DNA of 64,000 bases from Vitrella brassicaformis CCMP3155 (Eukaryota; Protista; Chromerida). The stretch covers positions 1-64,000 of the forward strand of contig CDMY01000477.1 in NCBI GenBank assembly GCA_001179505.1. Reading direction: 5' to 3'. Position numbers and translations under genes: made by a program. The notes under the pieces are model-generated. The model worked only from the letters and a program-made list of their open reading frames with translations. It was not told where the DNA came from and did no database searches. This document shows, one piece after another, positions 1-56,700 of the stretch (within the stretch, counting starts at the first letter, position 1; the number at the start of each line of letters is the position of its first letter).

Positions 1-1317
1 TACACGTACACACACTCACTGGATGAATGGAAGGGATGTCATAGGGTACACGTATACACACTCACTGGGTGGATGGAAGGAACGTCATAGGGTACACGTA
101 GACACACTTACTGGAGAGATGGAAGGGACGTCATAGGATACACGTAGAAACTCACTGGATGGATGGAAGGGACGTCATAGGGTATACGTACACACACTCA
201 CTGAAGGTCAAAGGGTACACGTAGACACTCACTGGAGGGATGGAGGGATGGAAGGGACGTCATAGGGTACACATACACACACTCACTGGATGGATGAAAG
301 GGACGTCATAGGGTATACGTAGACACTCACTGGAGGGATGGAGGGATGGAAGGGACGTTATAGGGTACACGTACACACACTCACTGGATGGATGGAAGGG
401 ACGTTATAGGGTACACGTGGACGTCATAGGGTACACGTAGACACACACTGGAGGGATGGAAGGGACGTTATTGGGTACACGTACACACACACTCACTGGA
501 TGGAAGGGACGTCAAAGGGTACACGTAGACACTCACTGGATGGATGGAAGGGACGTCATAGGGTCACACTCACTGGAGGGGGGTACACGTACACACACTT
601 ACTGGATGGATGAAAGGGACGTCATAGGGTACACCGTACATACACTCACTGGATGGATGAAAGGGACGTCATAGGATACACGTACACACTCACTGGATGG
701 ATGGAAGGGACGTCATAGGGTATATGTACTTACTCACTGGAGGGATGGAAGGGACGTCATAGGGTACACGTACACAAACTCACTGGATGGATGGAAGGGA
801 CGTCATAGGGTACACGTACACACACTCACTGGGATGGAAGGGACGTCATAGGGTACACGGATGGAAGGGACGTTATAGGGTATACGTAGACACACACTCA
901 CTGGATGGAAGGGACGTCATAGGGTACACGTACTCACTGGAGGGATGGAAGGGACGTCATAGGGTACACGTACACACACTCACTGGAGGGATGAAAGGAA
1001 TGTCATACGGTACACGTAGACACTCACTGGAGGGATGGAAGGGACGTCATAGGGTAGAAGGGACGTCATAGGGTACACGTACACACACACTCACTGGATG
1101 GATGGAAGGAATGTCATAGGGTACAAGTCCACACACACTCATTGGAGGGATGGAAGGGACGTCATAGGGTACACGTACACACACTCACTGGAGGGATGAA
1201 AGGAATGTAGGGTACAAGTCCACACACTCACTGGAGGGATGGAAGGAACGTTATAAGGTACACGTACAAAGGGTACACACACTGGAGGGATGGAATGGAC
1301 GTCATAGGGTACACGTA
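1..1317. repeat. Minisatellite, unit ~40-50 bp (GGAAGGGACGTCATAGGGTACACGTACACACACTCACTGGAT-like), about 30 degenerate copies
   Basis: The core GGACGTCATAGGGTACACGT recurs throughout; the ORFs at 456-674 and 787-1071 are translations of the repeat. Runs off the left edge of the window. Confidence 0.95.
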
Positions 1318-1570
1318 CCGCCTTGGCCCGCTGTGTGCGCATCGAAGGTGAGCTGCCAAAATAGACTGATCGACTCCACTCCACGTGTCTCGCGTCTGTG
1401 TGTTCAGAGCAATCGTTGGGCCCCTTCTACTTGATCCAAGATTCCCCGGCGGCCCCGAAGGTACGTACGTGAGGGGCAAAAGAAGAGGCTTATCAACATT
1501 CATTCGCTCATGTCTCCTTCTCTTCTCCATTTTTGTCTCCGCATATTTGGCCGCTTCGGCGGCCACCGAG
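1318..1570 (+). repeat. Module R1, copy 1 (~250-bp intron-exon-intron unit)
   Basis: ccgccttggcccgctgtgtgcgcatcgaag|gtgagc...tgttcag|agc...gccccttctacttgatccaagattccccggcggcccc...ggccaccgag, near-identical to 4163-4425 and 6226-6466. Confidence 0.9.
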
Positions 1571-2382
1571 AGGAAGCTCGAAGGCAGAGGACCAACATGG
1601 AGGAGCGGCGTCGCAAGGACCAGGAGGAGGACAACAAGCGACAGGAGGTGACATTGTCCCCCACCCCTCACACACACACCCACACATACACACATACACA
1701 CACACACAGATGGATCTCCGACTCTCCATTTCCGCCATCCCTCTTTGGCTGTGTGTTGTGTGTGTTGTGTGTTGTGTGTTGTGTGTTGTGTGTGTTGTGT
1801 GTAGGTGTTGAAGAAGCAGCAGCGAGACGACAGCCACGGCGAGGGAGGAGTAACGGGTGCAGCAGCAGCTCCAGCTCCCGCAGCTGCAGCTGGGGGCAGT
1901 GGTGGCGGCAAGGCACCCATCAAGCGCAAGAGCAGGAATCAGCGGCGGAAGGAGAAGAAAGAACGGCAGAGGGCGGCAGAGGAGAGGGCGGCACTCGACA
2001 CAAAGCTATGGACATCTGATGCACACCTGCCGTGTCTCTCTGCAGGAAGGCCAAGGAGGATATCGATCGCCGTCTGCATTTTATATTTCTGAGGCTCTCT
2101 CGTGACTGACATGGATGACTCCGATGGTTATCCACTCCCTGAACAGTAAGAGGCCACCACCTGGTGTGAGAAATGTCGAGGTCTGCGTGTCTGTCTGTGT
2201 CTCTCACCAGCGCTGCGTTTTCGGAAGAGAAGACGAGATGGCCGGCCGAGACAGTCGGGGTGCTGGAGATGATGCAGTTCTCATTCAACTGCCCGGCTTC
2301 CCTCTGCCGACACCCCGACGGCACTGTCCGCCCCGACCCCGACAGCACCCACTGAGGGCAGGGCAGCCACTTCCTGGTTGGC

Positions 2383-2460
2383 CACTATGTGGTGTTGGGC
2401 GTGTCGCCCTTTGCGAGTAGGGAGGAGATCAAGGCGGCGTACAAGAAAGCAGCCTTCTGG
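2383..2460 (+). pseudogene. J-domain (DnaJ) N-terminal exon fragment, copy 1
   Basis: HYVVLGVSPFASREEIKAAYKKAAFW followed by a gtaagc donor; the continuation is hidden by the gap at 2495. Confidence 0.7.
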
Positions 2461-2847
2461 GTAAGCGGAGCGATGCATTGCATGCTGGAGGGATNNNNNN
2501 NNNNNNNNNNNNNNNNNNNNNNNNNNNNNNNNNNNNNNNNNNNNNNNNNNNNNNNNNNNNNNNNNNNNNNNNNNNNNNNNNNNNNNNNNNNNNNNNNNNN
2601 NNNNNNNNNNNNNNNNNNNNNNNNNNNNNNNNNNNNNNNNNNNNNNNNNNNNNNNNNNNNNNNNNNNNNNNNNNNNNNNNNNNNNNNNNNNNNNNNNNNN
2701 NNNNNNNNNNNNNNNNNNNNNNNNNNNNNNNNNNNNNNNNNNNNNNNNNNNNNNNNNNNNNNNNNNNNNNNNNNNNNNNNNNNNNNNNNNNNNNCGACGA
2801 GGGGCTGGTAAGTAAGTGGGGCATGCACGTGGGTCGTTAGTTAGTTA

Positions 2848-3535
2848 AGTACACGACTGTGTCCATGTGGCTCGTGATTGACTGCAGGGTGTGTATGAGG
2901 AGTACCGCCAGAAGGTCATGTTCTTGTGGCGGAGAGAGGTCATCGAGGACTTGCCGGTAAGTGCAGACCGCCTCAATCAGTGAAGGAATATATGACACAC
3001 ACACACAGCCGTACACATACGCGCCACACACACGTTCTTCTCCACATATCTGTCTGTCTGTCTGTCTTTGTCTGCCGACATCCACGCAGGAGATAGTCAA
3101 GAATTGGTTCCTGAAGGACGACCAAGAGGTCCCGGCCGCCGTGCTGGAAGCCGCCGCTGCTGCGGTCGAGATACCCACCCCGCGCCTGTCGACGACAGTG
3201 GCCACGACCAGCTGGAGCCCTCACGCCCAGCCATCCCACCGCTCGCCCTCCCAGGGCCCGCCGTGTCACCGTCGACCTCCCCCGGCCCCACACACCACCC
3301 ACAGCACCAGCACCAGCCGCACAGCAGCACGCCCCCACCGATGCCCCTTCGCACTGCCACCACACCCAAGGTCACAGCCCACAGCCCCGGTGGACCAGCC
3401 GCCGCACCCTCCACAGCCACACTCAAGACCAAGACACAGCAGCAGACACACAGCGGCAACGGCGAGACCGCTTGCGCCCGTCCACTCTGCATCCAACAGC
3501 ACACAGAAGCTGCCGGGTCAGATGACCTCCCCGTG
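2848..3535 (+). pseudogene. Orphan spliced coding fragments of unknown origin
   Basis: Exons GVYEEYRQKVMFLWRREVIEDLP|EIVKNWFLKDDQEVPAAVLEAAAAAVE joined by a GT-AG intron, followed by Pro/Thr-rich sequence; no start codon found. Confidence 0.4.
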
Positions 3536-4162
3536 TGTGGTGCCGTACACATCTTTGCCTGTGTGTCTGATTGCAGACTGCCAAGGAGCCCGTCACTCAC
3601 CACGTCCAGGCCACCAGCGTACGCAGATGACTACACGAGACACGACGTCACACGAGGAGAGCTTATGTATGTCCTCTGTTTATCGCTGTGTGTATCCATG
3701 CAGCCAGCCAATGTCGGATGCGTCGGCGAAACCTCACACACATCCACCCACTCACTCACAACATGGCCCCATCCAAGTGCACCTGCCTGCCTGCGTCTGT
3801 GGGTGTGCAGGTCGGTTCGGTCCCTGGTGGCCATGCATGTAGGCCGACATATATATACTGTGTTCACAGACAAGTGAGAATTCTCTGTTTTTGCAGATCG
3901 CCGTCTACATTTTATATTCGTCGGCATATCTAACAATCGATGCGCTGCCCCGTTCGCCCTCCCATTACGGAGTCGCCATTTGGCTGCCCATCTGGCTGCC
4001 CATCTGCCAGCCGCCTGCGAGTCGGCAGCGTGAGAAGCACCAAGACACCGCAATCCAATCGGTATGCACACACCCGGTGTGTCTGTGTATGTGTTTGTTG
4101 CTGGTGTGCAGATCGTTGTCTACATTTTATATTTAACCGACTGATGACGACACGCACCCGCA

Positions 4163-4425
4163 CCGCCTTGGCCCGCTGTGTGCGCATCGAAGGTGAGCTG
4201 TCAAAATAGACTGATCGACTCCACTCCACGTGTCTCGCGTCTGTGTGTTCAGAGCGATTGAAGGCCCCTTCTACTTGATCCAAGATTCCCCGGCGGCCCC
4301 ACAGGTGCGTAAGTGAGTGAGAAAGGAAGAGGGTCATCGACATTCGCTCATGTCTCCTTCTCTTCTCCATTTTGTCTCCGCATATTCGGCCGCTTCGGCG
4401 GCCACCGAGATCGACGAAGTGCCGC
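4163..4425 (+). repeat. Module R1, copy 2
   Basis: Direct match by eye to 1318-1570 and 6226-6466. Confidence 0.9.
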
Positions 4426-5072
4426 ACAGGAGGTCGAGAGGAAGGACAAGCCGCGGTGGGCCGACTACGAGGATGATACAAGTAGGTATACAGACAGACA
4501 GACAGACAAAGGGAAACAGACAAAGGAAACAGACAAAGGGAAACAGACAAAGGGAAGCAGACAAAGGGAAACACTCGACACTGTGGAGGAGGCCTTCTCG
4601 CAGGCACAAGAAGCGGCATCGCAAGGACGAGGAAAAGGACAAGAAGCGGCAGGGGGAGGTGACATTGTCCCCNNNNNNNNNNNNNNNNNNNNNNNNNNNN
4701 NNNNNNNNNNNNNNNNNNNNNNNNNNNNNNNNNNNNNNNNNNNNNNNNNNNNNNNNNNNNNNNNNNNNNNNNNNNNNNNNNNNNNNNNNNNNNNNNNNNN
4801 NNNNNNNNNNNNNNNNNNNNNNNNNNNNNNNNNNNNNNNNNNNNNNNNNNNNNNNNNNNNNNNNNNNNNNNNNNNNNNNNNNNNNNNNNNNNNNNNNNNN
4901 NNNNNNNNNNNNNNNNNNNNNNNNNNNNNNNNNNNNNNNNNNNNNNNNNNNNNNNNNNNNNNNNNNNNNNNNGAGGGAAACAGATCAAGGGAAAGAGACA
5001 GACCTTAGACGCAATGTACCTGTGAGATATTTGTGTGTGTGTGCAGGTCGGTGCAGTTCCTTCCTGGTTGGC

Positions 5073-5289
5073 CACTATGTGGTGTTGGGCGTGTCGCCCT
5101 TTGCGAGTAGGGAGGAGATCAAGGCGGCGTACAAGAATGCAGCCCTCTGGGTAAGCGGAGCGATGGCTGCGATGCATTGCATGCTGGAGGGATGATGTGA
5201 CGCGGATGGCGCCGTGCGTGTGCACCGGTGTGTTGGTTGCAATGGGTGTGCTGTCATTGCATTCGATGCAGGCTCATCCCGATAGGGGT
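5073..5289 (+). pseudogene. J-domain fragment, copy 2, truncated just after HPD
   Basis: HYVVLGVSPFASREEIKAAYKNAALW | intron 5151-5271 | AHPDRG; helices III-IV are absent. Confidence 0.75.
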
Positions 5290-5319
5290 TTCTTGAAGGA
5301 CGGCTATATGTTTGGTTGC

Positions 5320-5838
5320 CACACCAACAGACATCGTCACGGCGGTGCTGAAGTACCATGTTGTGAGGGGCGCTTTCGGGGTGCGCCGGTGCGGGAGCTC
5401 GCCGCGCAGAGCGGGGGTGCGCTGCCGACACTCGAGGGGTCCACACTCCCCGTCCTCGCCGATGGGATCGACGACATCACTGTTGGTACGTACGTTGATT
5501 GATGCATCCGTCCAGACGACCAGGCTCAAGGCCCTGCTGGCGACGTGCAGCATCGGCCTGGCAGCTGGAGAGGCCTACACCGTCTTCGCCTTTATACAGA
5601 CGACCAGATCAACCAGCTGGACGCCCGCCTCATCGAGAGAATAGCGACCGACGAGGAGCTGGCCAGGGCAGGGATTGCCACACCCACAGACATCCTGACG
5701 TCCGTGCTCAAGTACCATGTTGTGAGGGGCGCTTTCGGTGTGCGGGAGCTGGCCGCGCAGAGCGGCGGTGCGCTGTCGACACTCGAGGGGTCCACACTCC
5801 CCGTCCTCGCCGATGGCATCGACAACATCACTGTTGGT
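5320..5838 (+). pseudogene. Two tandem fasciclin (FAS1) domain fragments
   Basis: YTVFAF...ATPTDILTSVLKYHVVRG...LSTLEGSTLPV resembles the FAS1 H1 and YHVV motifs. Copy 1 (5320-5485) has a frame disruption (gtgcgccggtgcggg); both copies end in a gtacgt donor. Confidence 0.7.
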
Positions 5839-5849
5839 ACGTTGACATG

Positions 5850-6290
5850 ATACACACCCGTATACACGCACACACACACCATACACATCTTCGCCTGTGT
5901 GTGTGTGTGTGTGTGTGTGTAGTAGGTCGTTGCAGTCGGAGGCCTTCGAGCAGATCGTGGGTCGCAAGGCGGACTTGATGGGGAGGGACATCCCCAACCT
6001 GAAGACCGAGATCATCCAGAAGGAGCGGTACGCCTGACGGGCTGTGGGTACTCATCTGAGTTTTCCCATGTCTGCTGTGACTCTCAGGAGATCCTACGCC
6101 TGCTGAAGGCCAAGAAGGAGGCCCTCTTGGTGTGCAGATCGCTGTCTACGTTTTATATTCGATCGACTCATGACGTCTCTTCCACCGCACTGCCTTCCCA
6201 CTCCAATGATCCGCAAAGGGTATGTGACCTGTCGAAATAGACTGATCGACTCCACTGCACGTGTCTCGCGTCTGTGTGTTCAGAGCGATC
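5850..6290 (+). repeat. ~440-bp module with an inverted copy at 20110-20560
   Basis: Intron + exon SLQSEAFEQIVGRKADLMGRDIPNLKTEIIQKER + intron + exon EILRLLKAKKEALL + motif + start of R1; aligns by eye with the reverse complement of 20110-20560. Confidence 0.9.
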
Positions 6291-6466
6291 GAATCCAAGG
6301 CCCCTTCTACTTGATCCAAGATTCCCCGGCGGCCCCACAGGTGCGTAAGTGAGGGGCAAAAGAAGAGGCTCATCAACATTCATTCGCTCATGTCTCCTTC
6401 TCTTCTCCATTTTTGTCTCCGCATATTCGGCCGCTTCGGCGGCCACCGAGATCGACGAAGTGCCGC
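6226..6466 (+). repeat. Module R1, copy 3 (5' part differs)
   Basis: Direct match by eye to copies 1 and 2 from aaatagactgatcgactcc onward. Confidence 0.9.
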
Positions 6467-8550
6467 CTGAAAGTCACCGAGGTCGCCCTTTGTAGAGCAT
6501 ACAGACTGACAGACGATGATACAAGTAGGTATACAGACAGACTGACAAACAGATAGACAGACTGACAGACTGACAGACAGACAAAGGGAAACAGATCAAG
6601 GGAAAGAGACAGACCTTAGACGCAATGTACCTGTGAGATATTTGTGTGTGAGTGTTGTGTGTGTGCAGGTCGGTTCGGTCCCTGGTGGGGCAAGGGGTGT
6701 TGCAAGGTGGGCTGGATGGGTGGATGGGAGAAGAGAGAGACACATGGATGGATCTGTGTATGGTGTGCGTTTCTGTGCCATTGATGGATGGATGGATGGT
6801 GTCCGTTTCAGGCTACGATTCAGCTGACAGACCTCAAAACGGTCAGGATGATCAAGCCGTCCTCCCTGTTCGGCCAGCAGGCTGCTCGCAACAACCACCC
6901 CATGGTCCCTCCCATCGCCCCGTCCTTCTCCACCCATTCGGCAAAACACAGCTCAAGTACTCGCTCAGTGTCGGCACCACCACCACCACCAACAGCAACA
7001 ACCGGCCCATCGCCATCCTGCCGCCGCCCAAGACCAAGCGTGCTGCCATTCCCCCACCCCCATCGCCCTTCGGTGGCAAGAACAGCGTTGGCGTTGGCGT
7101 GTCGGTGCAGACGAACGTGTCGCGTGTGGTACGTGGTGGGTCGCGGGGGCCCATCCGTGTGATACGTATCCAGCGGTCAGTGCCCTCGATGATGCCTCGA
7201 TAGACGGATGGACGGATGGGTGGACCCGCTGTCCCATGTGTGTGCATGCCACGCCATGCCAATTCACTCATTCACGCACCCACTTGCTGATTTCTGCCTC
7301 CCGAGGCAGACAGACAGACAGACACCCACCCCTGACACACTCCACACCGACGCGGAGACAGACAGAGAGGGCACACCGTTTTGCACCCACCCACCCACTA
7401 CACTCACTAGTGGCGTCTCCTCTTCATGCCTTTCTGCCTACGATGCATGATTGACTTCTCCCTCCCTCCCTCCCTCCCTCTGTGGGCCGTCCGTGGAGTG
7501 TATTTGCACATCTCTCTGTGTGTCTGGGCCGGCCGGGGGGATCTGTGGCTGTGGGTGCTAGTCACTGAGTGAGTGGTGTGTTCTGATGTTTTTGTACATG
7601 CGCGACGATGAATGAAACAGAGCGCATGAGGCACACACGCGTCCATCCATCCACCTTTCATCCATACAGTGAGTGCACTGTGTGTATGCTGCACACACCA
7701 TCGCCCCTTCTCTCCAGAGTTTTCTTACGTGGGTCTAGTCATGTCGTGGTGTTCTTTTCTGTCGTCGTCGGTCTATCGGTCCGTTTTTCTCCATCTTTTT
7801 TCTCATCGGGTGGGCTGTTAGTCAGGGGAGCTCAGTGTGTCGTTGTCGACTGCGTTGGTACCTTCCCACACCGCCTTACCACAGCTAGGTGGGTGCACAA
7901 AGGGATGGATGGATGGTCGGTTGTCTGGCAGGCACCACACGCGGCACCCATCTCGCATCCATCCGACGAACCAGGCAGCCAGCCAGCCAGCCAAAGTCTT
8001 TGTCCGTCCGTCTGTCTGTCTATTGCGGCATACAACACCATGCGCACACCTACATCTGCCAGGACGAAAGGAAGACAGGAAGCACTGAAACGTGATTACC
8101 AATCGCTGTGTACATTTTATATCAGTCAGGCTATTGCCTTGATTGATCACGTGCAGGTTGTGTTGTACACAGTCGTGCAGGACAGAGACAGTAGCATGAT
8201 TAGACGTACACAGCGTGTTCAAAAGAGAGACACTTCCTGAACAACTTGCAAGTCATGTTTGATGGACGGACTTGCATCCTTTTGTCTTACGGCTCGCACG
8301 CACTCATTTCCATGCGGTATTAATTGGCAGTACATGTTGGACGTCAAGACGAAAGGCCAACGGATCTGGCGAGGGGCGGGCGGAGTAGAAACACGCTCCC
8401 AGGGGCACCAAGCCTTAGGCGAACTAGGGCAAACAACGCCAGCTTAAGCCTTAAGACTTAGCCAGATCTCGGATCGCGTCCCCCGCGCGGATCGCGCATT
8501 TGGGGGCCCCGCACGCTTTCTCTCCGCCCGATCTGTTACCAAACAAAAGG

Positions 8551-10690
8551 ATGGGCGCGTCGTGTAGCCGTCGGCTCGGCGCTCTACTGCACATCGGAGG
8601 TCGTGGCCGTATCTCCCCTCCTCCGCCCACCGCAACCGACCAAGAAATCTCCACTGGTCGGACCAACAATACCAACCGCACAGCAAGGAGTGCCATAGCG
8701 TCGCCCTCCGCACTGCAACGCCCTCTGCTGGACGAATATGAGCTCCAGCACATTGTGGGGAGGGGCCAAACGGCCGTGGTGTGGCGTGCCCGGCATTATG
8801 AGTCGGGGGAGGAGAGGGCTGTCAAGCAGATACCCAAGAAGAAAGGCACCAGCGAGAAGCTGACGGCTTACTGGGAGCGGGAGGTCGCCGCTCTGGAGCG
8901 GTTCTCAGGCGTGGACCACGAGAATGTGATCTCGATGCATGAGAAGTTTGAGGACAGTGACTTCTATTACATTGTAAGGGAGCGGCGAGGGGCCCTTTGG
9001 CTTATGGGTTTATGTGTTTATCTTCCGTTTTGCAGGTGTTGGATCTGTGTCTCGGTGGTGAGCTATACTACCCGGTCCGGCAGCAGCAGTTCAGCGAGAG
9101 GAGAGCGGCAAAGATTATGTTCCAAGTGTTTCAGGCGAGAAGTGCCACGAGCATGACATCATACACAACGGTGGGCCGAATACGAGACGCAGACCTTTGG
9201 CCCTCTCAGATACAGCCCTGCGAGGGTGGTTCTACAGACATCAAAGCCGAGAACTTCCTCTTCGAGACTCCTTTGCCCGAATCACCCGTCAAGCTGATGT
9301 AAGCGCCCTCATTCCATTCCTCTCTCCCGTGTGCACATTCCTGTCCTGTCTCATATGCAGCGACTTCGGCTTGTCCGTCATCGACACATCCCCTTCCCGC
9401 GCGGCTGTCAAGCAAGAGGGCGGCTCCTCCCGAGCCCCCACCCCTTCTCTGCCCACGGCAGCCAACACATCGGTGGTGCCGCAGCCTGACGAATCTCGCT
9501 CACAGACGCCAGCAGACATGCGCCATCCCCCAGCGTATGCCTGCAGACTGCATCAAGCCGGCGAGGAGATACCAATGGGCGACAATGCGCATTATATCGC
9601 GCCTGAGGTGTTGAAGGGCATCGTCCGGAAGGAATCGGATATCTGGAGTGCCGGGGTGAGTTGGTTGCTGGGTGGAAAAAGCGCGTGGTTCATCTAATTC
9701 CCGTGTGGAAAGAGCAGGTGTTGATGTGGTTCTTGCTGAGTGGAAGCTACCCGTTTGATGGCCCTTCCGCCTCGTCTATACGTGAGGCCATCGCCAAAGG
9801 TACAGGAGCCCGCAATGCAGCTCCTGCGGATGCCGTCTGTATGTCTCGCGTGTGTGTCTCTCGTACGTGCCTGCCAGAGAAGTACGCCTTTGGCAGTGAA
9901 TGGAAGGACGTCAGCGACACGGTGAGACACACAGCAGAAGATGCGCAAGGCCTGAGTTGACTTGGCCTCGTCTCTGTCACTCCACAGGCGAAAGACTTCA
10001 TCCGAGCGTTGCTGGAGGTGGGTGCTGGCCATCATTTCACCCCCTGTGCATTCTGTATGTGTCTCGTGCTGCACTGCCCTTGTCCATCCAGCCTTGGTAC
10101 GAGTGGCGTCCCTCCGCTAGCGACGCACTGCAGCACAAGTAACCAGAATGTACCAACCAGAACATGCACACGTGTCTCTCCCTTCGGTTGCATTGCAGGT
10201 GGTTCATCCAGTGGCACTGCGTCAAGCAGCCCATCATGTCCGATGGCCCCTCACCCAGCGCCACACCAAACACGTCGAGACGGCCCCTCTTCGGCATCAT
10301 CGCCAGGGCCCATCGATGCGTGTGCCGTCCGACAAGAGAAAGAGGCAGCAGCGGTCTGCCCTGGGGGACGGCACACAGCAGGGTGAGGGCGGCCGGGAGA
10401 GCGCCCGAGGTTCAGCCAAGAGCATCCAGACGCTGAGGCCCAGCCAGATAACGTCGCTGTATGTTGGGAAGATGACCGCTTCCATGGCCAACAGCATCGT
10501 CGGCAGACACATGCCCGTGCCGGCCGCCGAGAGCAGCACGAGTCCGAGTGGTACGTCTGAGGACTTGCGTGTGTTCTTCGACTCGTCGCTGCCGCACCTG
10601 TCGTCCCCGCCCATTTCCACTCCCGTCTGCGGCAGCCACAGACCATCAGTCGTGGACGACAAAAGGGGGGCCTGGCCTGACATTTGACCA
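8551..10690 (+). CDS. CAMK-group (CDPK-like) Ser/Thr kinase, multi-exon, with an apparent frameshift near 9137; possibly a pseudogene
   Basis: MGASCS N-terminus; GRGQTAVV, RAVKQ, EREVAAL; spliced HNDIKAEN (intron 9171-9237), IDFGL, YIAPEVL, DIWSAGV, SGSYPF, AKDFIRALL. No EF-hands seen; 3' end uncertain. Confidence 0.85.
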
Positions 10691-10909
10691 TGGCATGCCT
10701 GCCTGCTCACGTGTATAGTGCTGGTGCAGCGTGGGTGACGAGCCTGTGTGGACGTGTGTGTGTGTGTGGAAATGCCTGTGTCCGCGACCGCGCCTGTGTT
10801 CGTCGGGAAGGTGCTGCAAAGTGCGCATCGAGAAGTAAATGGAAGCATTGAGCACCAGACAGGCACAAGTCTGTACACGCATCACTTGTCCACCGAACCA
10901 CAAAGCAGT

Positions 10910-12043
10910 CTAGTAGAACCACTCAGCGCCGCCCCCTGCCTTTTCCCTTCACTCCCCCGACAGCGAAAATGCTCGACGCCTTCTTTCGCTCTGTCTTGGC
11001 CTTGAGCTGCTGCCTGCACCCACCAACACACACCATACCACACCACACCAACCAAGAAATGTCCATGTGTGTGTATACATGGACGGATGCTGCTTACTGT
11101 TTTGCCTTGTTGGCCTGGGAGAGGTTAGTGTGTTTGCCGACGGACAGCTGCACCCCCAGCTCCCTCTCCTTCTCTCGCAGCTTCTGGAGCCGATCTTTCT
11201 CGTTCTTCCGCGCCTTGACCAGAATGTTGTAGGGAATCTTCGGACCCTTAGCGGCCTGCACACATACACGCGCAGCGAATGCGAGTGATAGCCTCTATCC
11301 GTGTGAAGCAGGTGTGTGCGTACCGAGCCCCCCAGCGCCCGTATCTTGGCCGCTTCGTACTGCCGCTGCTGCGCTTTGTCCAGCTCTGGATATGCTGCAG
11401 CACCACAACCACCACATGCGACTAGTGGTCCAGAGAGATCTCTCCATCTGGCTGTCCCGACTCACCCAGGTCTCGAATTTTCCTCAGTGTGTCATTGAAC
11501 TCATGGTTGTCCTTCGATGCCGTTGCAGCCTTGCCCTTCCGGCGCCCTGGGAGGGGGGAGGATGAAGCCGAGCCTTTGCCGAGCATCTTGGATACAGACG
11601 GGTCCTGACACACACAGACAGCCGCGAGAGTGCGCACCGCACACCTGCGCAGGTAGACCTACTGCACAACTGCACAACCGGGCATCGCTCACCAGAAACG
11701 CCTTGAGCTCATCTTTGGACGGCCGTGAAGGGGCTGCTGCCGAGTCGCTCGGCTTCGATTGGGCACCCTTGCGCCGCACTCCACCGAAGAACTCGTCTCC
11801 CCTCTGCTCATCTTCGCTTTTCACAGCCGATGACTCATCAGCCGGAGCCTTCACGCCAGCTGTTTCTTGAGCCTTCTGACGATTTGCCGAGGCACGGCGA
11901 TTCTCAGCGTTGCTGCCGCGGGAGAGAGATCTCTTCTTGGTCGTGGTGAGGGCGTCGCGGGTGCTTGTGGAGTCTTCTGGGGCGTCAAACGACGCTAGGA
12001 ACTGCTCGCCGAAGGCCTGGAGCCGCTCATCTACATCGTCCAT
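10910..12043 (-). CDS. C1orf131/Faf1-like (DUF4602) small-subunit ribosome biogenesis protein
   Basis: Spliced protein MDDVDERLQAFGEQFLASFD...YEAAKIRALGAR...KGPKIPYNILVKARKNEKDRLQKLREKERELG...GGAEWFY*; the RALGA-K-P-K-YN-L pattern recalls this family. Confidence 0.55.
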
Positions 12044-12219
12044 TTTTCCCCCTCCCAATCTTCGGAGCTCGCACTTCGATCAGGTGAGAAGAAGCGCATT
12101 TTGTGTGTTACAGACGTTACGGAGGCTCTATGTGGGCTTGTGCAGACGTAGTGGTGATACTGGGACCTTCCTAAGAGGCTGGAGGGAGTGATCGACCTCC
12201 CAGTCGGCGCAGGGTCAAG

Positions 12220-16515
<4,296 letters not shown>

Positions 16516-17661
16516 CGGCAGGACTGTGGTGATGGTGGTGGTGGTGGTGGTGTTGTGTGCACAGACATTCTTCTAGCACCGATTTCTCTGTGTATGGCCG
16601 CCCGATTGTATCCATCCCTTCGCTGAGTGGCTGGCCGGGGGTATGCGCGTGTGTCTGCCTGTACACAAATACTACTGGTATAGATGGATGGATGGATGGT
16701 GACACAGACAGGGATGTGCCCGCGGATCGATCGGTTTGCTGTGAGTTTTCATACAGGGAAGTAATGTAAGGGAGGTCGGTGGCTGGGTAGGTGCCTCTGG
16801 ACAGGTTGATGGATAGATGTGATCGGCGGGGCGGGTAAGACAGACAGACAGGCAGGCAAGCAGCGGACAGTACGGGGGGTGACAGGATCGATTGCCTGCA
16901 CTTAACGAGCATTGAGAGGATCAGCGACAGATATGAGTCTCAACTCAAACATTCCCATACACGCACGACACACGCACGGCATGTGTGACACGGAGACATC
17001 TATCGGTTCGAAGAAAACACCAATATATAAAATGTAAGCAACGATTGATCAGGTCACCTCTTCCCTGGCGTCTGTCGAATGAAAGGACGAGACACACAGG
17101 TATAAAATGTAGGCAGAGATGTCCTCTCCCGTCCCCTCTTCTCCTGACACCGCTGGTTCCTGCTCTTCCGCTTGCGGGGCGCCTTGCCGCCACCACTGCC
17201 CCCATCTACCCCTGCTGGAGGTGCTGCTGCATCCATTGCGCCCCCCTCACCCCGGTGTGTGCCGCCCTCGAGCTGTACCTTGGGGGCCGGCTCCTCCTGC
17301 TTGTCGTCCGCTGCTGCTCTACCTGATGCTGCTGCTCTCCGTGCTGCTGGATGGACATGCGGCCCGCCTCGCTCATGTGGATGTGGTCGTGCAGCCCATA
17401 ATGTCGGTTGCCGTGGTCCTCCTCCTGCATCGTGGCACCGGGTGCCTTGGCGTCCTCTTGCGAGGCGTGCTTGCGCTTGCCGAACAGCAGGCCGCCCATC
17501 AGGCCCGTGCTGGCCGAGGGTGTCTTCTTGTCGATGCTCTTGCGGCCAGCCGGGGATGTCTTCTTGTCGACTGCACACACACATACAGTACAGACAGACA
17601 GACAGACAGACAGGTGTGTGTGTTTAGGGGGGTTGTGCGGCCGGCCGGCCAAGTACAGTCA

Positions 17662-18296
17662 GTACCTCGGCGTCTCCGGTGTCGACTTCCTCGAGGAGGG
17701 CGGCCAGGGTGTTCTGCATGGCCTGCTCGACGCGCGAGAGCCAGGCGCTGAGTTCGGGGTCGTCAGAGATCTTGACAGCAGACTTGAAGTGCACCACCTC
17801 GTCCTCGCGACAACTGACATGGATCGACATCGATACGTACGGCCACGTCACGTGTGTGTTGGCTTGGGTGGTGTTGGCTGGCTGGCTGGCGTGGGGTGGT
17901 CTGGTCTGGGGCACCGTACCTCATGCCGACGATTTGGTCCGGGTCTTCGGTGTCGACTTCGAGGGCGGTGATGCCGGCAAACATCTTGTTCAGGTGCCGC
18001 TGCACCATCTTGACGTCACGCGAGTTGAAGATCATCTCCACCAAATCGGCGTCGCCTGGATGGAGGAACGAAGGAAGGAACCCACACACACACACACACC
18101 CCACACACGCACTTATTGGGAGGGGGGGGGTGGGTGTCTCGCAGACTTGCGTACGTACCGACGAAGTAGAATCTCGCGAAGTTGGATCGCTGCTTCTCTA
18201 GGTAGTCGCCGAGGGCCTTCTGGATCTTGGACAGCAGGTCAGACAGGTTCTTGGACAGCAGGTCAGACAGTCGGTCCAGACTCTTCTGAATGCCCC
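17662..18296 (-). pseudogene. Cytoplasmic dynein heavy chain fragment (linker/DHC_N2 region), 3 exons with introns retained
   Basis: [15 protein letters not shown](NLSDLLSK)[22 protein letters not shown]|[32 protein letters not shown]..|REDEVVHFKSAVKI..LSAWLSRVEQAMQNTLA; contains a 24-nt internal tandem duplication. Confidence 0.85.
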
Positions 18297-20109
18297 CTTG
18301 TCGCTGCTTATCGATGAACACAGCAAGCTGCTGCAGCGAAGTGCTGGGGCGGCAAAGACACACCAATATAAAATGTAGGCAGAGATATGACTCGATCCTC
18401 TTCGCCGGCAGGGCGGGGGCCTACACATGGCAGAAGGAGATGGTAGAAGAAAAGGATACTGCTCCTTTATCTACCTTGGCTGTTTTATCTATTGCTGGCT
18501 GCCTGGTTGGTCGGATGGATGCGAGATGGGTGCCGCGTGTGGTGTTCTTCATCCGTCGGGCGTCGGGGGTGCTGCAGGCGACGGCGACCTCCTCCTGGCA
18601 GAGGGTGGGGGAGTGGGCGCGCGTGGGCGTGGATGGGGGGTCGAATCCCTCATGCGGGAGCTTCGCCGCAGCTGCTGGGGGGGGTGATGGTCCCGTCACC
18701 TCCACTTGCAGGTCCTGCATCATGGGACGCAGACAGACACGAACCGCACAAACCCATTCATGTGTGGTGGAATGAATCGTCTGTGCGCGTAGGTGCATGG
18801 ACCGACCTTTATGGCTGTCGGCGGCTCCTCCCTCGCAAAGTACTTGGTCCACTCGAGCAGCGGCCGGAACCCCACTGTCTTGCGACCAGTGGGGCCCTGC
18901 CGCATGCACGAGCGGAGGGCTCGGGCGGGCGGGCTGGGGTGCCTGGCGGCCTTGCGTCGGCGCTCCCGCCTAGCGGCGTTTTTGGCCGTCCTCTTTTCGC
19001 TCCCCAGCCTCTCCTCCTCCGCCCTCCTCCGCTCTCTCCTCTCCTTTCGCCGCTGGTCACGGCTTTTCGGCGGGGCTGTGCTGCCTGTCGGCTGGTGGTG
19101 GTGGTGGTGGTGGTTGCTGTGTGGGGTGTCGATGGCGCCCCCGGCCTCGTCGCTGCTGGCGTCGGCGGCCTCAGGGACGGCCGTGGAGTCGTCCCTCTCG
19201 TCGCCCTCCTCCTCTTCCATGCCCGGCATCTCGTCCTGGTCCTCCTGGTCCTGGCCAGGCTGCTGGTCGGCTGCATCGGCCGGCGCGTCCTCCTCGTTGG
19301 GCTTCTCGTCGACGTCACCGAAAATGTCCGCATAGACATTCTGATAAGGGAGATGCAGACAAACGGTGAAGACCACACACTATGTGGCTGGTTGGTTGTT
19401 TGTCTCTCTCTCCCTGTGTGTGTGTGTGTGTGTGTGTGTGTGGTGCCAGCTCGCTTACGGTGAATGGCTCGGGCTGCATGACGGGCGGCAGCATGACAAG
19501 GACCACCAGGTCGGGCTCACGATCGTCGACCTTGCGCTGCTTGTCGTCCAAATAGTTGTCCAGGTGCTCGCGGGGCTGCATGTATGTGAACCGCCGACGG
19601 CTGCCCTTAAGCTGGGATGGCTCGTTGTCGGCCTTGAGGCGTACAGCAGCATCGACTGCCAGCCACCAGCCACCCGAGCGCTGCTGCGCTGCCCGGGGCC
19701 CCAAGAGCCGGTCGTGCACAGATGTCCCCTGCTGCTGGTGCTGGTGGTGGTGCTTGGGTGGCCGCGACGAGCCGTCCGTCTGCGCCTCGAGCTCACTCAG
19801 CAGCCCCTCGTAGCCCTCAATGAGCGGCTGGCCCAGCCTCTGCGCCAAGAGGTTGTGCCTGACGATGATCTGGCGCATCACTTGGGGCACCTCTGCAGCC
19901 ACGTCGGGGTTGTCGGCCACCCGGATCTCCTTGTAGAGGTACTGAGGGGTGAGCTGCTGCGTCTCGGCAGTGGTGGGCGGGAGCAGCTCCTTGAGCTTCT
20001 TGCTGATGTCCTGCACCAACTTCATGATCCGCTCCTTCTCCTCGGGCGGCACTACGTCGCCGCGGGGGAGGGTCGTGGGCCGAGTGTCAGCAGGCGGCCG
20101 ACATGCAAA

Positions 20110-20560
20110 CGGCGACAGATCTGCACACACAGACGCGAGACACGTGCAGTAGAGTCAATCAGTATCTTTCGACAGCTCACAGGCCCTTTGCAGATCATTG
20201 GAGTGGAAAGGCGGTGCGGTGGAAGGGACGTCATGAGTCGATCGAATATAAAATGTAGACACCGATCTGCACACCAAGAGGGCCTCCTTCTTGTCCTTCA
20301 GCAGGCGTGTGCTCTCCTGAGAGTCACAGCAGACATGGGAAAACTCAGATGAGTACCCACAGCCCGTCAGGCGTACCGGTCCTTCTGGCTGATCTGGGTC
20401 TTCAGGTTGGGGGTTTTCCTCCCCATCAAGGCCGCCTTGCGACCCACGATCTGCTCAGAAGGCCTCCGACTGCAACGACCTACTACACACACACACACAC
20501 ACACACACACAGGCAAAGATGTGTACGGTGTGTGTGTGTGTGTATACGGGTGTGTATGTG
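20110..20560 (-). repeat. Inverted copy of the 5850-6290 module, with a 1-nt insertion in the exon
   Basis: The reverse complement reads ggaggccttcTgagcag versus ggaggccttcgagcag at 5938. Confidence 0.9.
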
Positions 20561-21076
20561 TACCTGGTGATGTCCCTCGATTCGCATTTAAATGACACCG
20601 GTATATAAAATGTAAGCAACGATCAGGTCATCTCTTCCCTGGCGTCGGTCGAATGAAAGGAGAGAGAGAGATACGCTGATATGAAATGTAGGCAGAGATG
20701 TCCTCTCCCGCTGGCGGTGGCGGCGGCGGCAGCGGGTGGGCTTTGGAGGGGTGGTCCTCGCCGCCCTCCTCCGACACGTCTGCCGGCAGAGCTGCAGCTG
20801 AAGCACGCTGCATCTTGCGCAGAAGCAGCAGCTCTGCCGGCCCGAAGAAATATTTGACTCTATACATTGCTGTACCATGGCCTGCTTGGGCCGCACATTT
20901 CCGGGTATCTCCCTCTCCATCAAGGCCGCCTCGTCAGTCACGATCTGCTCGAAGTCCCGCGACTGCAACGACCTACACACACACACACGCACACACACAC
21001 GCGCGCGCGCGCACACAGACACACAGGTAAAGATGGGTACGGTGCGTGTGTGTGTGTGTGTGTGTGGACAACGTAC

Positions 21077-21261
21077 CTGCAGGACTTTCTCGAGGAACTT
21101 GTCAGTGCACTGGAGGTGTCGCAGTCTGCACAGCCGCTTGATCTCGTCGGTGAGGATGTCCACAGTGAACCGCTTCCTCGAGGCGCGGTAGAACTCCAGC
21201 ATGGCGTTGGTCAGGGCGTCGCTGTGGTTGCGCAGACCCAGCAGCATCGCTCTCGCCGTAC
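21077..21261 (-). pseudogene. Single exon fusing two non-adjacent cytoplasmic dynein segments
   Basis: RAMLLGLRNHSDALTNAMLEFYRASRKRFTVD (resembles the end of AAA3) fused in frame to ILTDEIKRLCRLRHLQCTDKFLEKVLQ (resembles the segment just before the AAA2 P-loop). Confidence 0.7.
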
Positions 21262-22363
21262 CTGCACGCACCAGGATACAGCACAGCAGAGAGACACGGC
21301 AGGTGAGCATCAGATGGCTCTCATTGGGCTCATCTTCATCTCAGCATGCATCACGTGGGAGCCCGCCTGACTGCCTCGCTGCGACGCCCAGGTGCCTTTC
21401 CGGCGCCCACAGACACGCCCTCCCATGCAGCCCTCCACCACCATGCAAGGAGCCCTTCACCGAATCCCTCACGGCCTCGCTGCGCTGCCTCCACGCCCCT
21501 CGCACCACCTCCTGGAAGACCTGCTGCTCACCATTCGAGTATGTGCGTTGTATCGACCAGTCCTCGCAGTCCGGCTCCTTCATCATAGTCGATAAGCGAC
21601 AAGAGCACACCACAGAACTTGCGAAATTGCAGACCACAGAACTCGTGAAATAGTCGCTGAAAACTGTTTCATGGGTATACATACTGTAGTGGGGCTGCAG
21701 AAGGTTGGTATGTCTTGCGTGGTGGGGGTCGCGGGCCTCGCCGCCTGGCCCAGTCAGTCCTAGTAGTAGCCATGTCCGGAGATCAGTGACGTGAAGTGGT
21801 CCCCCTCGTTGGTCATCAGTCCGTAGTCGTCTGTGGGTGTAGTTCGGGGGTCTTGTCGACGTAGTCGCCGCCGCAGGCAATGCATGTGTCGGGGGGGGGA
21901 TGAAAGGGCAGGGGCTGGATAGTGGGGGCTTCATTTCTTCCCCTTGCCTGCACACAGACACGCCACACGCACAGAGACACAGGCGGAGGCGTCAGTCATC
22001 ACTTCGCCGCGGCATGCAGCGATACCAAGAGATCTACGTGCGTCTGTCTGTCTGTCTGTCTGTCTGTGCACAGTATGTACTGCATGTGCGCGTGCTGTGC
22101 AGCCGTCCGCACCCTTTTCCTTGGCCTTGGCCTTCGGTTTGGGCTTCGCCTTCTTGATGGGCGGCTTGCTCACGATAGTGATGGGCGTTCTGGGGGATGC
22201 GGCCTCCTGGGCGTGTGTCTTGACCATTTTTCCTCGCCTTGTCGAACCAGCCCGCGTCCGCCACACCTTTTTTCCTGAAATGGAAAAGAGTTGTCTGTGA
22301 AGCAGCAAAGGCAAAGTTAGTGCACTATCAACACCTGATTCTTTGACTAGCTAGAATACTTCA

Positions 22364-22720
22364 TTCACCTGTTGAGGACTCCGTCGAGATAAGGAGACGG
22401 CCATTAAGAGGAAGAACCAAAGTTTCATCATCTGCAGACAGAATTGGCCAAAAGGAAAGGACGTGATCACACCATCCATATACCACACCGCCATCGCCGC
22501 AGGCGACAACCACTCATCAAGTCCATCGCCAAGTCACCAACAAATGTGAGGTGTGCCTAAGGCGACGGGCTCCTAATTTCATGTGCAGGCGTCATTCGCA
22601 TCACCGCACACAAGCGCACCACACCACGTCACCACACACATGAACTCACTTGTTGAGGACTCCGTCGGGAAAAAGAGACGGCCATGAGGAGAAAGAACCA
22701 AAATTCCATCATCTGCACAC
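22364..22720 (-). repeat. Duplicated ~77-bp exon-like unit (22364-22440 and 22644-22720) upstream of the chimeric locus
   Basis: Both copies read tgcag|atgatg...ttctt...gccgtctc...gacggagtcctcaaca|gtga on the - strand, with acceptor and donor sites. Confidence 0.75.
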
Positions 22721-23432
22721 AAGCATGCCGACAGGGCACAGTGAGACCACCACAGGAATGAAACGGACTGTGCAGTCACCCTTGAACATCATGCACATGC
22801 CATACCGTCACCACCCAACACAGAGACAATGAGACGTGCACTCACCTGAGAGGATGTTTTGAAGACCAAAGAAGGCGTCGTCGCAGTCAGCTGACGCCAG
22901 GCAGGTGTCAGGGAGTCGCCAGCTGTTCAGCAGACGGCAGGGCGGCACCGCCTGAGGCCGCCTCCCTCGTGGCATGGCGGTGGAGGAAAAAAGTGGCGGT
23001 TTTCATCCGGACGAGTTGGAGGGGTGGAAGGGGATGGGGCGGACCACACGAGCCAAAAAGAAGATGAAAACAAAAAGAAGCGGGGCATCTGTGGCCGCAA
23101 GAAGACTGAGAAGCCGAGTGCGAACGAAAACTGTGAAAGTGGGATAAATTCTTGTCGCGAATTTTTGAATTTCTCGTCCCGTCTCCAATTCTCGCCGAGG
23201 GAGATCATTGCTTGCGTCATCTCTTCGGTGAGCAAAAGAGATGCTTGAGACGCCCAGTGGGCAACAGTGGGCCAAAAAACTGAGCTCGCATCAATTGCGG
23301 GACAACTCGCCTAGCAGTGCTGTGTTGCTGAGTTTTCCGCTGCCGTTATATTTCGATTGCTGTATTGGTGGCGAGGCAGCATGCGGTTGTTCGTAATGTT
23401 GGATCAGTCCGGATTCTGACTCGTCTGTGATT

Positions 23433-53739: not shown

Positions 53740-56700
53740 CGTGTGCAGCTCTCGGCAATTGTGGCCAACTGCAAGATCCAGGCCGTGCGCGCATTCAGGA
53801 GGGGACAGAAAGAGGGCCAGCACCTGGGAGATGAATCTTCCGTCGCCGACGACATCGCTCGCGCTGTCATTCGCGACCGGCGACTCCAGCCACCCTTCCT
53901 GCAGTGGCTGTCGGAGCACATGTGGATTGGCAACCTCGTGTTCGATCTTACGATGTTTACAAGCATGTCGTTCTCAAACGCATACGGAGACCACGAGGAG
54001 CAAGATTTCTGTCAGATCGGTTTTTCGCAGCGTAATCTCGTCCACTGGCACCCGGGAGCGGTTATCTTGGACAGGGTACTCGGAAATGTGCAGGCGCAGG
54101 CCTTTACTGGGGCTTACGCTTTCCTGATGCTGGCTTTGATCCTGATGCTGGCTGTGAGAGACGGCTTGCCTCCCTTCATCTGGTTCCTCCTGGCCTACCT
54201 GATCCGCTTTGCCTTTGACATGACAATTACTTCGAGTTTATTCTATTTGTCGTCACTCGGTCACTGCGACGACGCCAAAGGCGCACTGGCTTCGATCCTG
54301 CCGTTCTATGCAATGGCAGGCTAGAACATCGCTTGCACGAGCTGTTGGTGATGCTGATGGGGCTGTCCGTAGCCTTCTCGGCCCTTTTGTACATGTAAGG
54401 AGCAAGCTGCCCGGTGCTATGTGTGAATGCCAAAGCTAGAGTGCTAATGAGTGTGTGTCTGCAGTTCTGTGCTTAAAGCGCTTGAAGATGAGACGACAGC
54501 ACTAGTCAACTGCCACAAGGTGAGAGGATACGGTGATACTGCAGCAACGCAACTCTGTCGCTCGTGCAACAGGAAGAGTCGTTCTCGCGTTTTGCAAGTC
54601 GATTATTCCACTCCTCTACTTTGATCCTCTCTTCTTTTCCAAGACGGAGCGCGCAGTCAGAGTAAGCCCGCCTTGTCAGTGAATCGCAGGTGACACGGCG
54701 TTTCCCCTCCGTCTTTGTCTCAGGGGCTACTTATGCTCGTGGTCATGCTGGCTTACCACATCAAGACGCAACCTTACCTTGGGAGGCCTCGAATCAACAA
54801 CCTTAGGGCCGCCGTATACGCAATCGGTAAGTACAGACACACATGGACCACATGCATGCTGTGGCATCCTGGCGCTTCGTTCCTCAGCCTTGACGGCATT
54901 TTTCGTTACCTTACCCGCCGTGTTTGCTACGCGGATGCCGGGCAGCTCTCGGATGTACAGCGAGACGTGCCTTCCTTTTGTCCTCTTTCCCTCAATTGGC
55001 ATCCCTTTGGCGGTGTTGGTTTTTTGCCTGAATCACCGGCGAGCGAGGCGAGGAGATACGTCGGCCGTGGTGCGGCAGGTGCTGGACGGGGACTTCTCTG
55101 GCGATCGATCTGTGGCGGTGGGCTTCTGTCTGTCAGAGAAATTCAGAGCTATGATGTGCCAGGGCAAGCTGAATATGGTCGATCGCCACGCCTCAGCACG
55201 CTCACTGAGGCGCTCGTTGACATACACTGAAGGGCTTGACGGGGTCTCGCAGCCATGTACCTCCGAAGTGGAGCCACCTCGCCCTCCATCTGCCGTCCCT
55301 GTCATGTCTCCGGCCTCGCCACGCCGCCCTCCCCCAATGCTCCCACATCAGCCTGAAGATCAGATGGTTGAAACAGTAGTCAACGTGCAGCAAACATTAC
55401 GAGGGACGGAGAAGCGCGGGCTGCGGCTGCAAGAAGCGCCTCGCCTGAGACATGAAATACCTTCGCTGAGGAACGCTGTCCACAGGGTCGTGTCTCTTTT
55501 ACGGCTGCTGAAGTCTTTAGATGTGGTCCTTTTATATCGGCTCGGTGTGAGTAGAAAGGAAATCTGACTCATTCTGAACGAGTGGTGCTCATCCAGTCTC
55601 GTTGTATTGCTTTCAGGTCCGTACACTCATGAAGCACCGGACGCCGTTGCAGGTGGTGATTGAGAGCATTCCGGTGCTTCCTGAGAGAAGCCTCAGCGTC
55701 CTCCTGAGGTTTGCCGGTTCACATCGGTAAGGACGGGAGGCAAAAGACATACAATCCTGACTAGCCGGCATCGCTTTGTCCGCGGTCTTTCAGGCGATGT
55801 GCGGCAGTTTTGCGGAACGGTCTGTTCCCCTGCCTCATCAATGACGTACCTGCGGAGACCTTGCAGCTTGCCGACCAGCTGATGTCTCTTTCGAAACGAA
55901 GAAGGGAGAGACTGGTCCAGGTGTCAGGGCCGGGACGGGAGAGGCTGTTGCAAAACCTGATGGATACGCAGAACAATGACAGTGTACGGTTCTGCATCGC
56001 CATACCCAAGACAGCTGACGTCGTCAATGTCGCTGTGGTGCTCGCGACAAACGACAAGACACCACCGCTACTCTCATCCATGGACCTCCACATTTTCCTC
56101 TCTCACCCTTCGGCTGCCCTTGCTGTTGGAGACGCACTGGAGACTACAGCTCAACAGCTCCGCTCATTCGTCAGCGGCCTCAAAGACCGGCATCGAGGGG
56201 CGATCAAGACACGCGACTCTATATCAAGAGCGTTTCAAAGCCCAAGTGGCCACTCCATCGGTGTGGGTGGCCTGGCCGCGGCAGGTGTCTGGCGCATCGT
56301 CGGGCAACAAGTCGTCAGAACAATTGAGCTCCCAGGCGGACGCGGAGAAGGGCGTCCACTTCTCGAAGGCCACTGATGAGCTTTCAAGACGGTCTTCAGT
56401 CACCCGCAGTCTCCTCAAGGCCGCAACTATCCTCTCCACTCAACCCAATCCTGTCCACTCAACTATCCTCTCCACTCCGCAACTACCCACCGGAGCAAGA
56501 GAGACACGACGGGGTCACACACGAGTACCTGCCTCTGTTGCTTCTCAGAATGGACCCGGTCCACCTGAGTCCTCCAGCACCCATGCTCAAGTTCCAGCTC
56601 AAGTTTCTTCCTGTGACGATGCCTCTGTTTCGGGCACCACGAAGCACGAGGGCCGCCGATGGAGCGTTTCTGCTTTCCCACAAGGGCCAACCACGACTGC

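Follow-up and report, generated by a model that had tools for sequence, protein, structure and literature searches.

We analysed a window of 64,000 nucleotides (positions 1 to 64,000 of contig CDMY01000477.1) from Vitrella brassicaformis CCMP3155, in which two blocks, block 1 (1311–8132, + strand) and block 2 (17015–21340, − strand), are DNA-level patchworks of captured gene pieces. Both blocks carry copies of an oriented 31-bp motif that marks the downstream ends of units and not the joints between pieces. The motif is a real, genome-specific and undescribed 3' mark of gene-fragment patchworks, and its mechanism is divided between a mobile end and an RNA signal. We tentatively favour the first, in which a Helitron-like copying system would use the motif as a 3' end of non-canonical form, and regard it as possible rather than probable.

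The first-pass annotation of this sequence had described a 21-bp word with eleven copies. All eleven were recovered at their places with 0 mismatches in the window, against a mean of 0.02 in shuffled sequences, and they scored 33–39 bits with a position weight matrix (PWM) versus 7.9 for the next-best window site. The PWM gave no decayed copies in the window, and the absence of the motif from the other ~42 kb was confirmed. The conserved unit is longer than the 21-mer first described: six free bases follow, after which position 28 is G in 9/9 and position 31 is T in 8/9 of the independent downstream contexts, which gives a motif of 31 bp with the consensus ATC-KBY-G-YB-TRC-ATTTTATAT-N6-GNMT. 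These two counts include a copy on another contig, and their nominal P values (~1e-5 each) are inflated by kinship among the copies. The same 16 bases are kept across ~9 unrelated flank contexts, and positions 4–9 and 22–27 are variable. The sole other TTTTATAT in the window, at 55517–55547 (+), has G at position 28 and a poor left half (4 bits); it lies near the end of a Pfam-less open reading frame (ORF) region, with ~0.3 such sites expected by chance. The motif was absent from the metagenome contigs searched, and two single viral-contig matches to a relaxed pattern, in AT-richer DNA, were taken as chance.

Block 1 contains five copies on the + strand (2066–2096, 3897–3927, 4112–4142, 6138–6168 and 8102–8132), all of type A among the three subtypes A, B and C. 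An acceptor-like CAG stands immediately before the copy at 3897, and a shared tail (tail A) follows those at 4112 and 6138. The six copies of block 2 lie on the − strand at 17015–17045 (type B), 17090–17120 (type C), 18356–18386 (type C), 20236–20266 (type A, a paralogue of the 6138 copy), 20593–20623 (type B) and 20669–20699 (type C), the last being the first copy of the block, with cargo still upstream. A 2-kb period proposed for the copies was not sustained, as it passes over the copy at 3897, spans two placeholder gaps and has no counterpart in block 2, where the spacings are 76, 357, 1880, 1266 and 75 bp. The copies at 17090–17120 and 18356–18386 show 28/31 identity over exactly the 31-mer with unrelated flanks on both sides, and the 31-mer has two sharp edges, with ~9 distinct contexts on its upstream side and ~9 on its downstream side. 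In the window copies, position 8 co-varies with positions 26–29; the left and right halves are thus linked, which indicates that the motif moves whole.

The strand polarity noted in the first reading was also observed: the copies are all + in block 1 (2066–8132) and all − in block 2 (17015–20699), in each case the strand that encodes the identified cargo. Both blocks terminate at a motif copy (8102–8132 and 17015–17045, respectively), beyond which lies ordinary-looking intergenic DNA. At its upstream end, block 2 starts with cargo and carries no motif copy; this limit is uncertain (21340–22400). The third locus is that of CEM35631, an annotated Vitrella J-domain protein (P0002, locus L002, contig CDMY01000859.1) that was reached from a J fragment of the window. 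Locus L002 contains exactly one motif copy (25 bits; next site 3.8). It lies on the strand of the gene, 160 bp beyond the stop codon and 30 nt beyond an acceptor-like site, and no motif stands upstream in the sequence read (the gap 9123–9422 is unread). This copy reads ATT, whereas A followed by TC is found in 11/11 window copies. The block ends and the single L002 copy after the stop codon indicate that the motif marks downstream (3') ends, a position that it occupies in 3/3 loci seen. The motif was absent from the ordinary window genes and from six neighbouring genes in L002, including a NACHT-TPR gene.

Seven window segments are copies of the CEM35631 gene or a close paralogue with 75–98% DNA identity, so much of the repeated scaffold in block 1 is the 5' end of the J gene. 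The segment at 2370–3545 (+) corresponds to L002 10336–11411 across the gap 2495–2794, and it keeps its introns and has a broken frame. The segment at 4299–4573 (+) is a copy of the 5' end of the gene (L002 9951–10234), with related copies at 1465–1571 and 6335–6683, and the segment at 4976–5317 (+) comprises exons 2–3 with their intron and is joined to FAS1 sequence via a 4-bp microhomology. The exon/intron borders were kept in 12/12 tested cases, and no spliced junctions were found for the J gene. These results indicate that capture occurred at the DNA level, and an RNA-templated (retroposed or reverse-transcribed) origin was rejected on the same grounds. Within L002 10001–12015, the 3' part of the CEM35631 gene (after 11411) has no window counterpart, and this part might be another patchwork that terminates at the motif. 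CEM35631 has no cluster mates at 90% identity.

The search with spliced models took each exon separately. The earlier assignments to J-domain, FAS1 and dynein were supported by Pfam (DnaJ, Fasciclin, DHC_N2 and DYN_lid) and by PDB (cytoplasmic dynein). Between two fasciclin (FAS1) pieces at 5316–5842 (+) lies an 18-bp filler (5496–5513), a copy of sequence in J intron 3. A cytoplasmic dynein DHC_N2 piece at 17690–18300 (−; limits approximate) consists of three exons with introns and contains an in-frame 24-bp tandem duplication at 18225–18270 (−). The chimeric exon at 21077–21250 (−) fuses a dynein lid piece (3vkg 1474–1505) in frame to a second dynein piece, which is probably from an earlier part of the protein (3vkg about 869–900, a weak match). 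Long orphan coding-like exons at 19318–20154 and 18723–19379 (both −) have no Pfam, Atlas or length-matched homologue. No homologues of the ORFs 20591–21310 and 19318–20154 were found in a length-limited search, which is uninformative on long donors, and Atlas gave no usable match for the ORF 19459–20130. A match in the representative search (P0001, locus L001) was a spurious repeat protein, and a supposed likeness of the module 5926–6030 to the dynein tail was not confirmed.

Three modules common to both blocks lie upstream of motif copies, as had been reported. The first, at 5850–6284 (+), is shared with 20557–20120 (93%) and partly with 21057–20903, and it spans the motif at 6138. The second, at 1838–1972 (+), is shared with 17251–17123, which ends 3 bp before the motif copy at 17120. 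The third, of 51 bp at 7933–7983 (+), is shared with 18544–18494 (−, 98%) and lies 119 and 108 bp before the motif, respectively; the DNA between this module and the motif is unrelated in the two blocks. Repeated modules differ by 2–19% substitutions.

The joints between pieces gave a different picture from the ends of units. We mapped 46 breakpoints by hand, and 5 of them lay within 12 bp of a motif copy versus 2.6 expected (P = 0.12). The proposal that copies sit at or near cargo boundaries was consequently not upheld, and the lack of enrichment indicates that the motif does not serve as the recombination site for the individual pieces. The inspected joints contained 3–4-bp microhomology (two joints), one longer shared splice-donor word and the 18-bp templated filler. 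Microhomology and templated filler are the pattern expected of template switching. The first-pass interpretation of a terminus, target or recombination site divides: the patchworks are real and the motif behaves like a terminus at the downstream ends of units, and a recombination site found no support. A target site with duplication likewise found no support, as no 8-mer and only scattered 6-mer recurrences were found upstream, where the unit ends are undefined.

We propose that the blocks would arise in two layers. In the first layer, repeated template switching between gene loci at the DNA level, using short microhomologies that are often in introns, would yield co-oriented, intron-retaining and mostly broken gene pieces, with most joints formed without involvement of the motif. 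Such an origin was demonstrated for the J pieces and may extend to the other pieces. In the second layer, the motif would be the conserved downstream end of units that are copied to new sites by trans-acting Helitron-like machinery (rolling-circle, with no target duplication), and captured DNA would be free to replace the unit interior. Units that insert close to older ones, or within them, would leave internal motif copies, similar to the pseudo 3' termini of maize Helitrons. We favour the Helitron-like reading because of the short sharp-edged end, the ~9 unrelated contexts on each side, the absence from ordinary genes and the signal-spacer-nick-T layout. A broader claim, that Vitrella possesses a genome-wide gene-capture and exon-shuffling system with a single conserved, hairpin-less 31-bp end, which would copy any upstream DNA to new sites beside older copies and in this way build the rapidly changing gene arrays of Vitrella as well as certain new annotated genes, CEM35631 among them, is in our judgement doubtful.

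Several results weigh against a Helitron-like step. Neither an enzyme nor a partner end nor an empty site turned up: the search for a linked autonomous element, which had been suggested, gave no Rep/helicase among the 30 ORFs scanned, and no second shared end word (a partner end or an asymmetric terminal inverted repeat) is common to block 1, block 2 and the L002 unit. There is no CTRR end at the motif, which reads GNM followed by T, and only weak hairpin-CTRRT sites at chance level were seen. No conserved hairpin exists: the motif copies share no consensus fold, and single-stranded DNA folds in the 50 nt upstream of the motif were unremarkable (z-scores +1.0 to −1.8). The pair of copies at 17015–17045 and 20593–20623 shows faint similarity continuing beyond position 31 (z 4.1). 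The joints are not enriched at the motif, as described above. An acceptor-like AG occurs within 50 nt upstream of the motif in 6–7 of 9 contexts (P ~0.002 in a test that is crude in definition, with three zero-distance cases that may share descent), and a Helitron-like end does not need it. Finally, in Helraiser the 5' end is indispensable and the 3' end loose (PMC4778049), so the essential end is the reverse of the conserved 3' motif in Vitrella.

The motif was compared with the ends of known gene-capturing systems. Maize Helitrons have a near-identical last 30 bp around different captured interiors, 28.7% of them have several termini, and 99% of their pseudo 3' termini have a damaged CTAG (PMC3288121). 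The Vitrella blocks resemble them in carrying intron-bearing fragments of several donors, in the conservation of the last ~30 bp, in several termini of the same direction and in an apparent lack of target-site duplications; they differ in that the motif has neither a hairpin nor CTAG, no 5' end is recognizable and the internal copies are intact. The general layout of a Helitron 3' end (signal, spacer, nick motif and target T) is paralleled by the 21-bp signal, the 6-bp spacer, GNM and T, with a sequence signal in the place of the hairpin. Helitron1 (HLE1) has 5'-TC after a target A, upstream of the cargo, and a 3' hairpin 10–12 nt before CTRR followed by T. The window copies have A followed by TC in 11/11 cases but at downstream ends; the reading of this word as a Helitron 5' end was therefore rejected for its wrong polarity, and the proposal of a canonical Helitron end failed also for want of a hairpin, CTRR, an asymmetric terminal inverted repeat and a partner end. 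Helitron2 (HLE2/FoHeli) has asymmetric terminal inverted repeats with hairpins and a T^T or TNAT^A target; neither a second shared word among block 1, block 2 and the L002 unit nor a fold was found. The motif does contain ATTTT and then A, as in the 3' end and target base of FoHeli1/2 of Fusarium (PMC5148889), but without an asymmetric inverted repeat or hairpin 20–50 bp upstream. Conservation runs 14 bp beyond ATTTT, so ATTTT is not the edge, and this end was rejected.

Pack-MULE and Pack-CACTA elements are non-autonomous mosaics of co-oriented genomic fragments. The blocks share this organization, but their motif copies are direct and not inverted within a block, and no terminal inverted repeats (TIRs) or target-site duplications were seen around the units. 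Microhomology-mediated break-induced replication and fork stalling and template switching (MMBIR/FoSTeS), together with repair of the polymerase-theta type, operate by microhomology-mediated template switching. The 3–4-bp microhomologies, the templated 18-bp filler and the out-of-order pieces of one donor gene agree with such repair, which alone predicts neither a conserved oriented 31-bp mark nor uniform orientation. The motif thus lacks the defining end features of HLE1, HLE2/FoHeli (PMC5148889, PMC11417382), Pack-TIR elements and integrons, and we file it in none of these classes. At most, the motif may work like the end of a gene-capturing Helitron.

In the foremost alternative, which we consider somewhat unlikely, the motif would act at the RNA level from the beginning of a last exon, as a signal for 3'-end processing, termination or stability in a class of lineage-specific, fast-changing genes, and error-prone break repair among these genes would build patchworks that inherit their 3' ends. 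The single sense copy in the CEM35631 locus, placed after the stop codon and an acceptor-like site, fits this explanation, as do the acceptor-like sites upstream of most contexts. Strand polarity and the block ends would follow naturally, the microhomology and templated filler are located away from the motif, and passive inheritance agrees with the constraint within blocks, where 4 core changes versus 8.5 expected were not significant relative to the surroundings (P = 0.07). On the other hand, the motif is missing from all ordinary genes of the other ~42 kb and from the six L002 genes, and sixteen fixed bases with a spaced GNMT far exceed the poly(A) signals known generally. The copy at 8102 lies ~900 bp beyond the nearest plausible stop, and no account is given of one 3' signal common to unrelated cargo without flank homology. 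A structured RNA is not indicated: Rfam gave only microsatellite-driven matches below the gathering score and none on the motif, and inspection together with Rfam led us to reject a hammerhead ribozyme. A possible likeness to the dinoflagellate spliced leader clashes with the 3' position and the retained introns.

Read on the opposite strand, the motif gives TATAAAA with an upstream element at fixed spacing, and it might be a TATA-type core promoter directed antisense into the pieces, the blocks then being single-strand small-RNA or silencing loci. Outside the motif copies, the 64 kb contain TTTTATA/TATAAAA just once, all terminal copies would point into their own block or gene, and three module edges lie 3–11 bp upstream of the motif, near the would-be start site. 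We nevertheless consider this improbable, since the ordinary promoters of the window have no TATA box, the sense-strand acceptor bias is unexplained and the edge enrichment is not significant.

A functionless motif, which could be left over from one short ancestral exon or element and carried along in segmental duplications, or else be the first part of a coding exon (IAVYILY), is more improbable still. Several copies do lie within larger duplications, and the within-block constraint test was not significant, but ~nine unrelated contexts keep the same 16 bases while the two intervening stretches vary. As for the coding exon, positions 3, 12, 15 and 18, which are third codon positions, do not vary, in contrast to the non-synonymous positions, which indicates that the motif is under no protein constraint; moreover, stop codons follow within 1–10 codons in several copies, and the L002 copy stands after the annotated stop. 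The repeated IAVYILY exon that the first-pass annotation named as its own counter-explanation accordingly fails.

An integron-like array, in which cassettes are excised and inserted by crossover inside the motif, is very unlikely. Bacterial integron arrays have same-direction repeats (attC) downstream of their cargo, and the Vitrella copies likewise separate units of 75 bp to ~2 kb in the same direction. In contrast to attC sites, the motif has no palindrome, inverted arms or fold, the linkage of its halves gives no hint of crossover within the core, ~89% of joints are without it, no copy stands at the upstream end of block 2, and the cargo is fragmentary and intron-bearing. Misassembly of the blocks is hardly credible: block 1 does contain two placeholder gaps, but block 2 is gap-free, the repeated modules have diverged, the flanks of one gap are colinear with the J gene and a motif copy exists on another contig.

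That colinear gap, at 2495–2794, lacks ~175 bp of the J gene, which supports continuity but not frame. The gap at 4673–4972 is preceded by a foreign piece (4574–4672) and might contain additional motif copies, and a third gap at 16035–16334 lies in the region of a JmjC gene, outside both blocks. A minisatellite with a 44–46-bp repeat (1–1310) truncates block 1 upstream. It contains 12 exact copies of the reverse complement of a 14–15-mer from the tail after the motifs 6138 and 20266 (window 6170 and 20220), adjoins the same tail at 1311, where a motif would stand, and may be subtelomeric. A kinase gene, a minus-strand gene and the JmjC gene lie between the blocks. The kinase gene (8552–10700, +) adjoins block 1, has TD in its catalytic-loop exon where HRD is expected and has unclear splice sites; it is possibly damaged. 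Upstream of block 2, a 76-bp direct repeat (22365–22440 and 22646–22721, 87%) precedes a divergent gene starting near 23430.

Plant Helitrons and Pack elements are already known to form patchworks of captured gene pieces. Our literature search found no paper on this motif, nor on a long, oriented 3'-end signal of patchworks that lacks hairpins and inverted repeats. The definition of the motif as 31 bp and its 3' polarity make the question of mechanism directly testable either way. Should the motif prove to be a signal for RNA ends or a promoter directed antisense, it would be a control element specific to one class of lineage-specific genes. Should it prove to be a mobilisation end, it would represent a new type of terminus, and a way by which new chimeric genes could arise among the closest photosynthetic relatives of malaria parasites.

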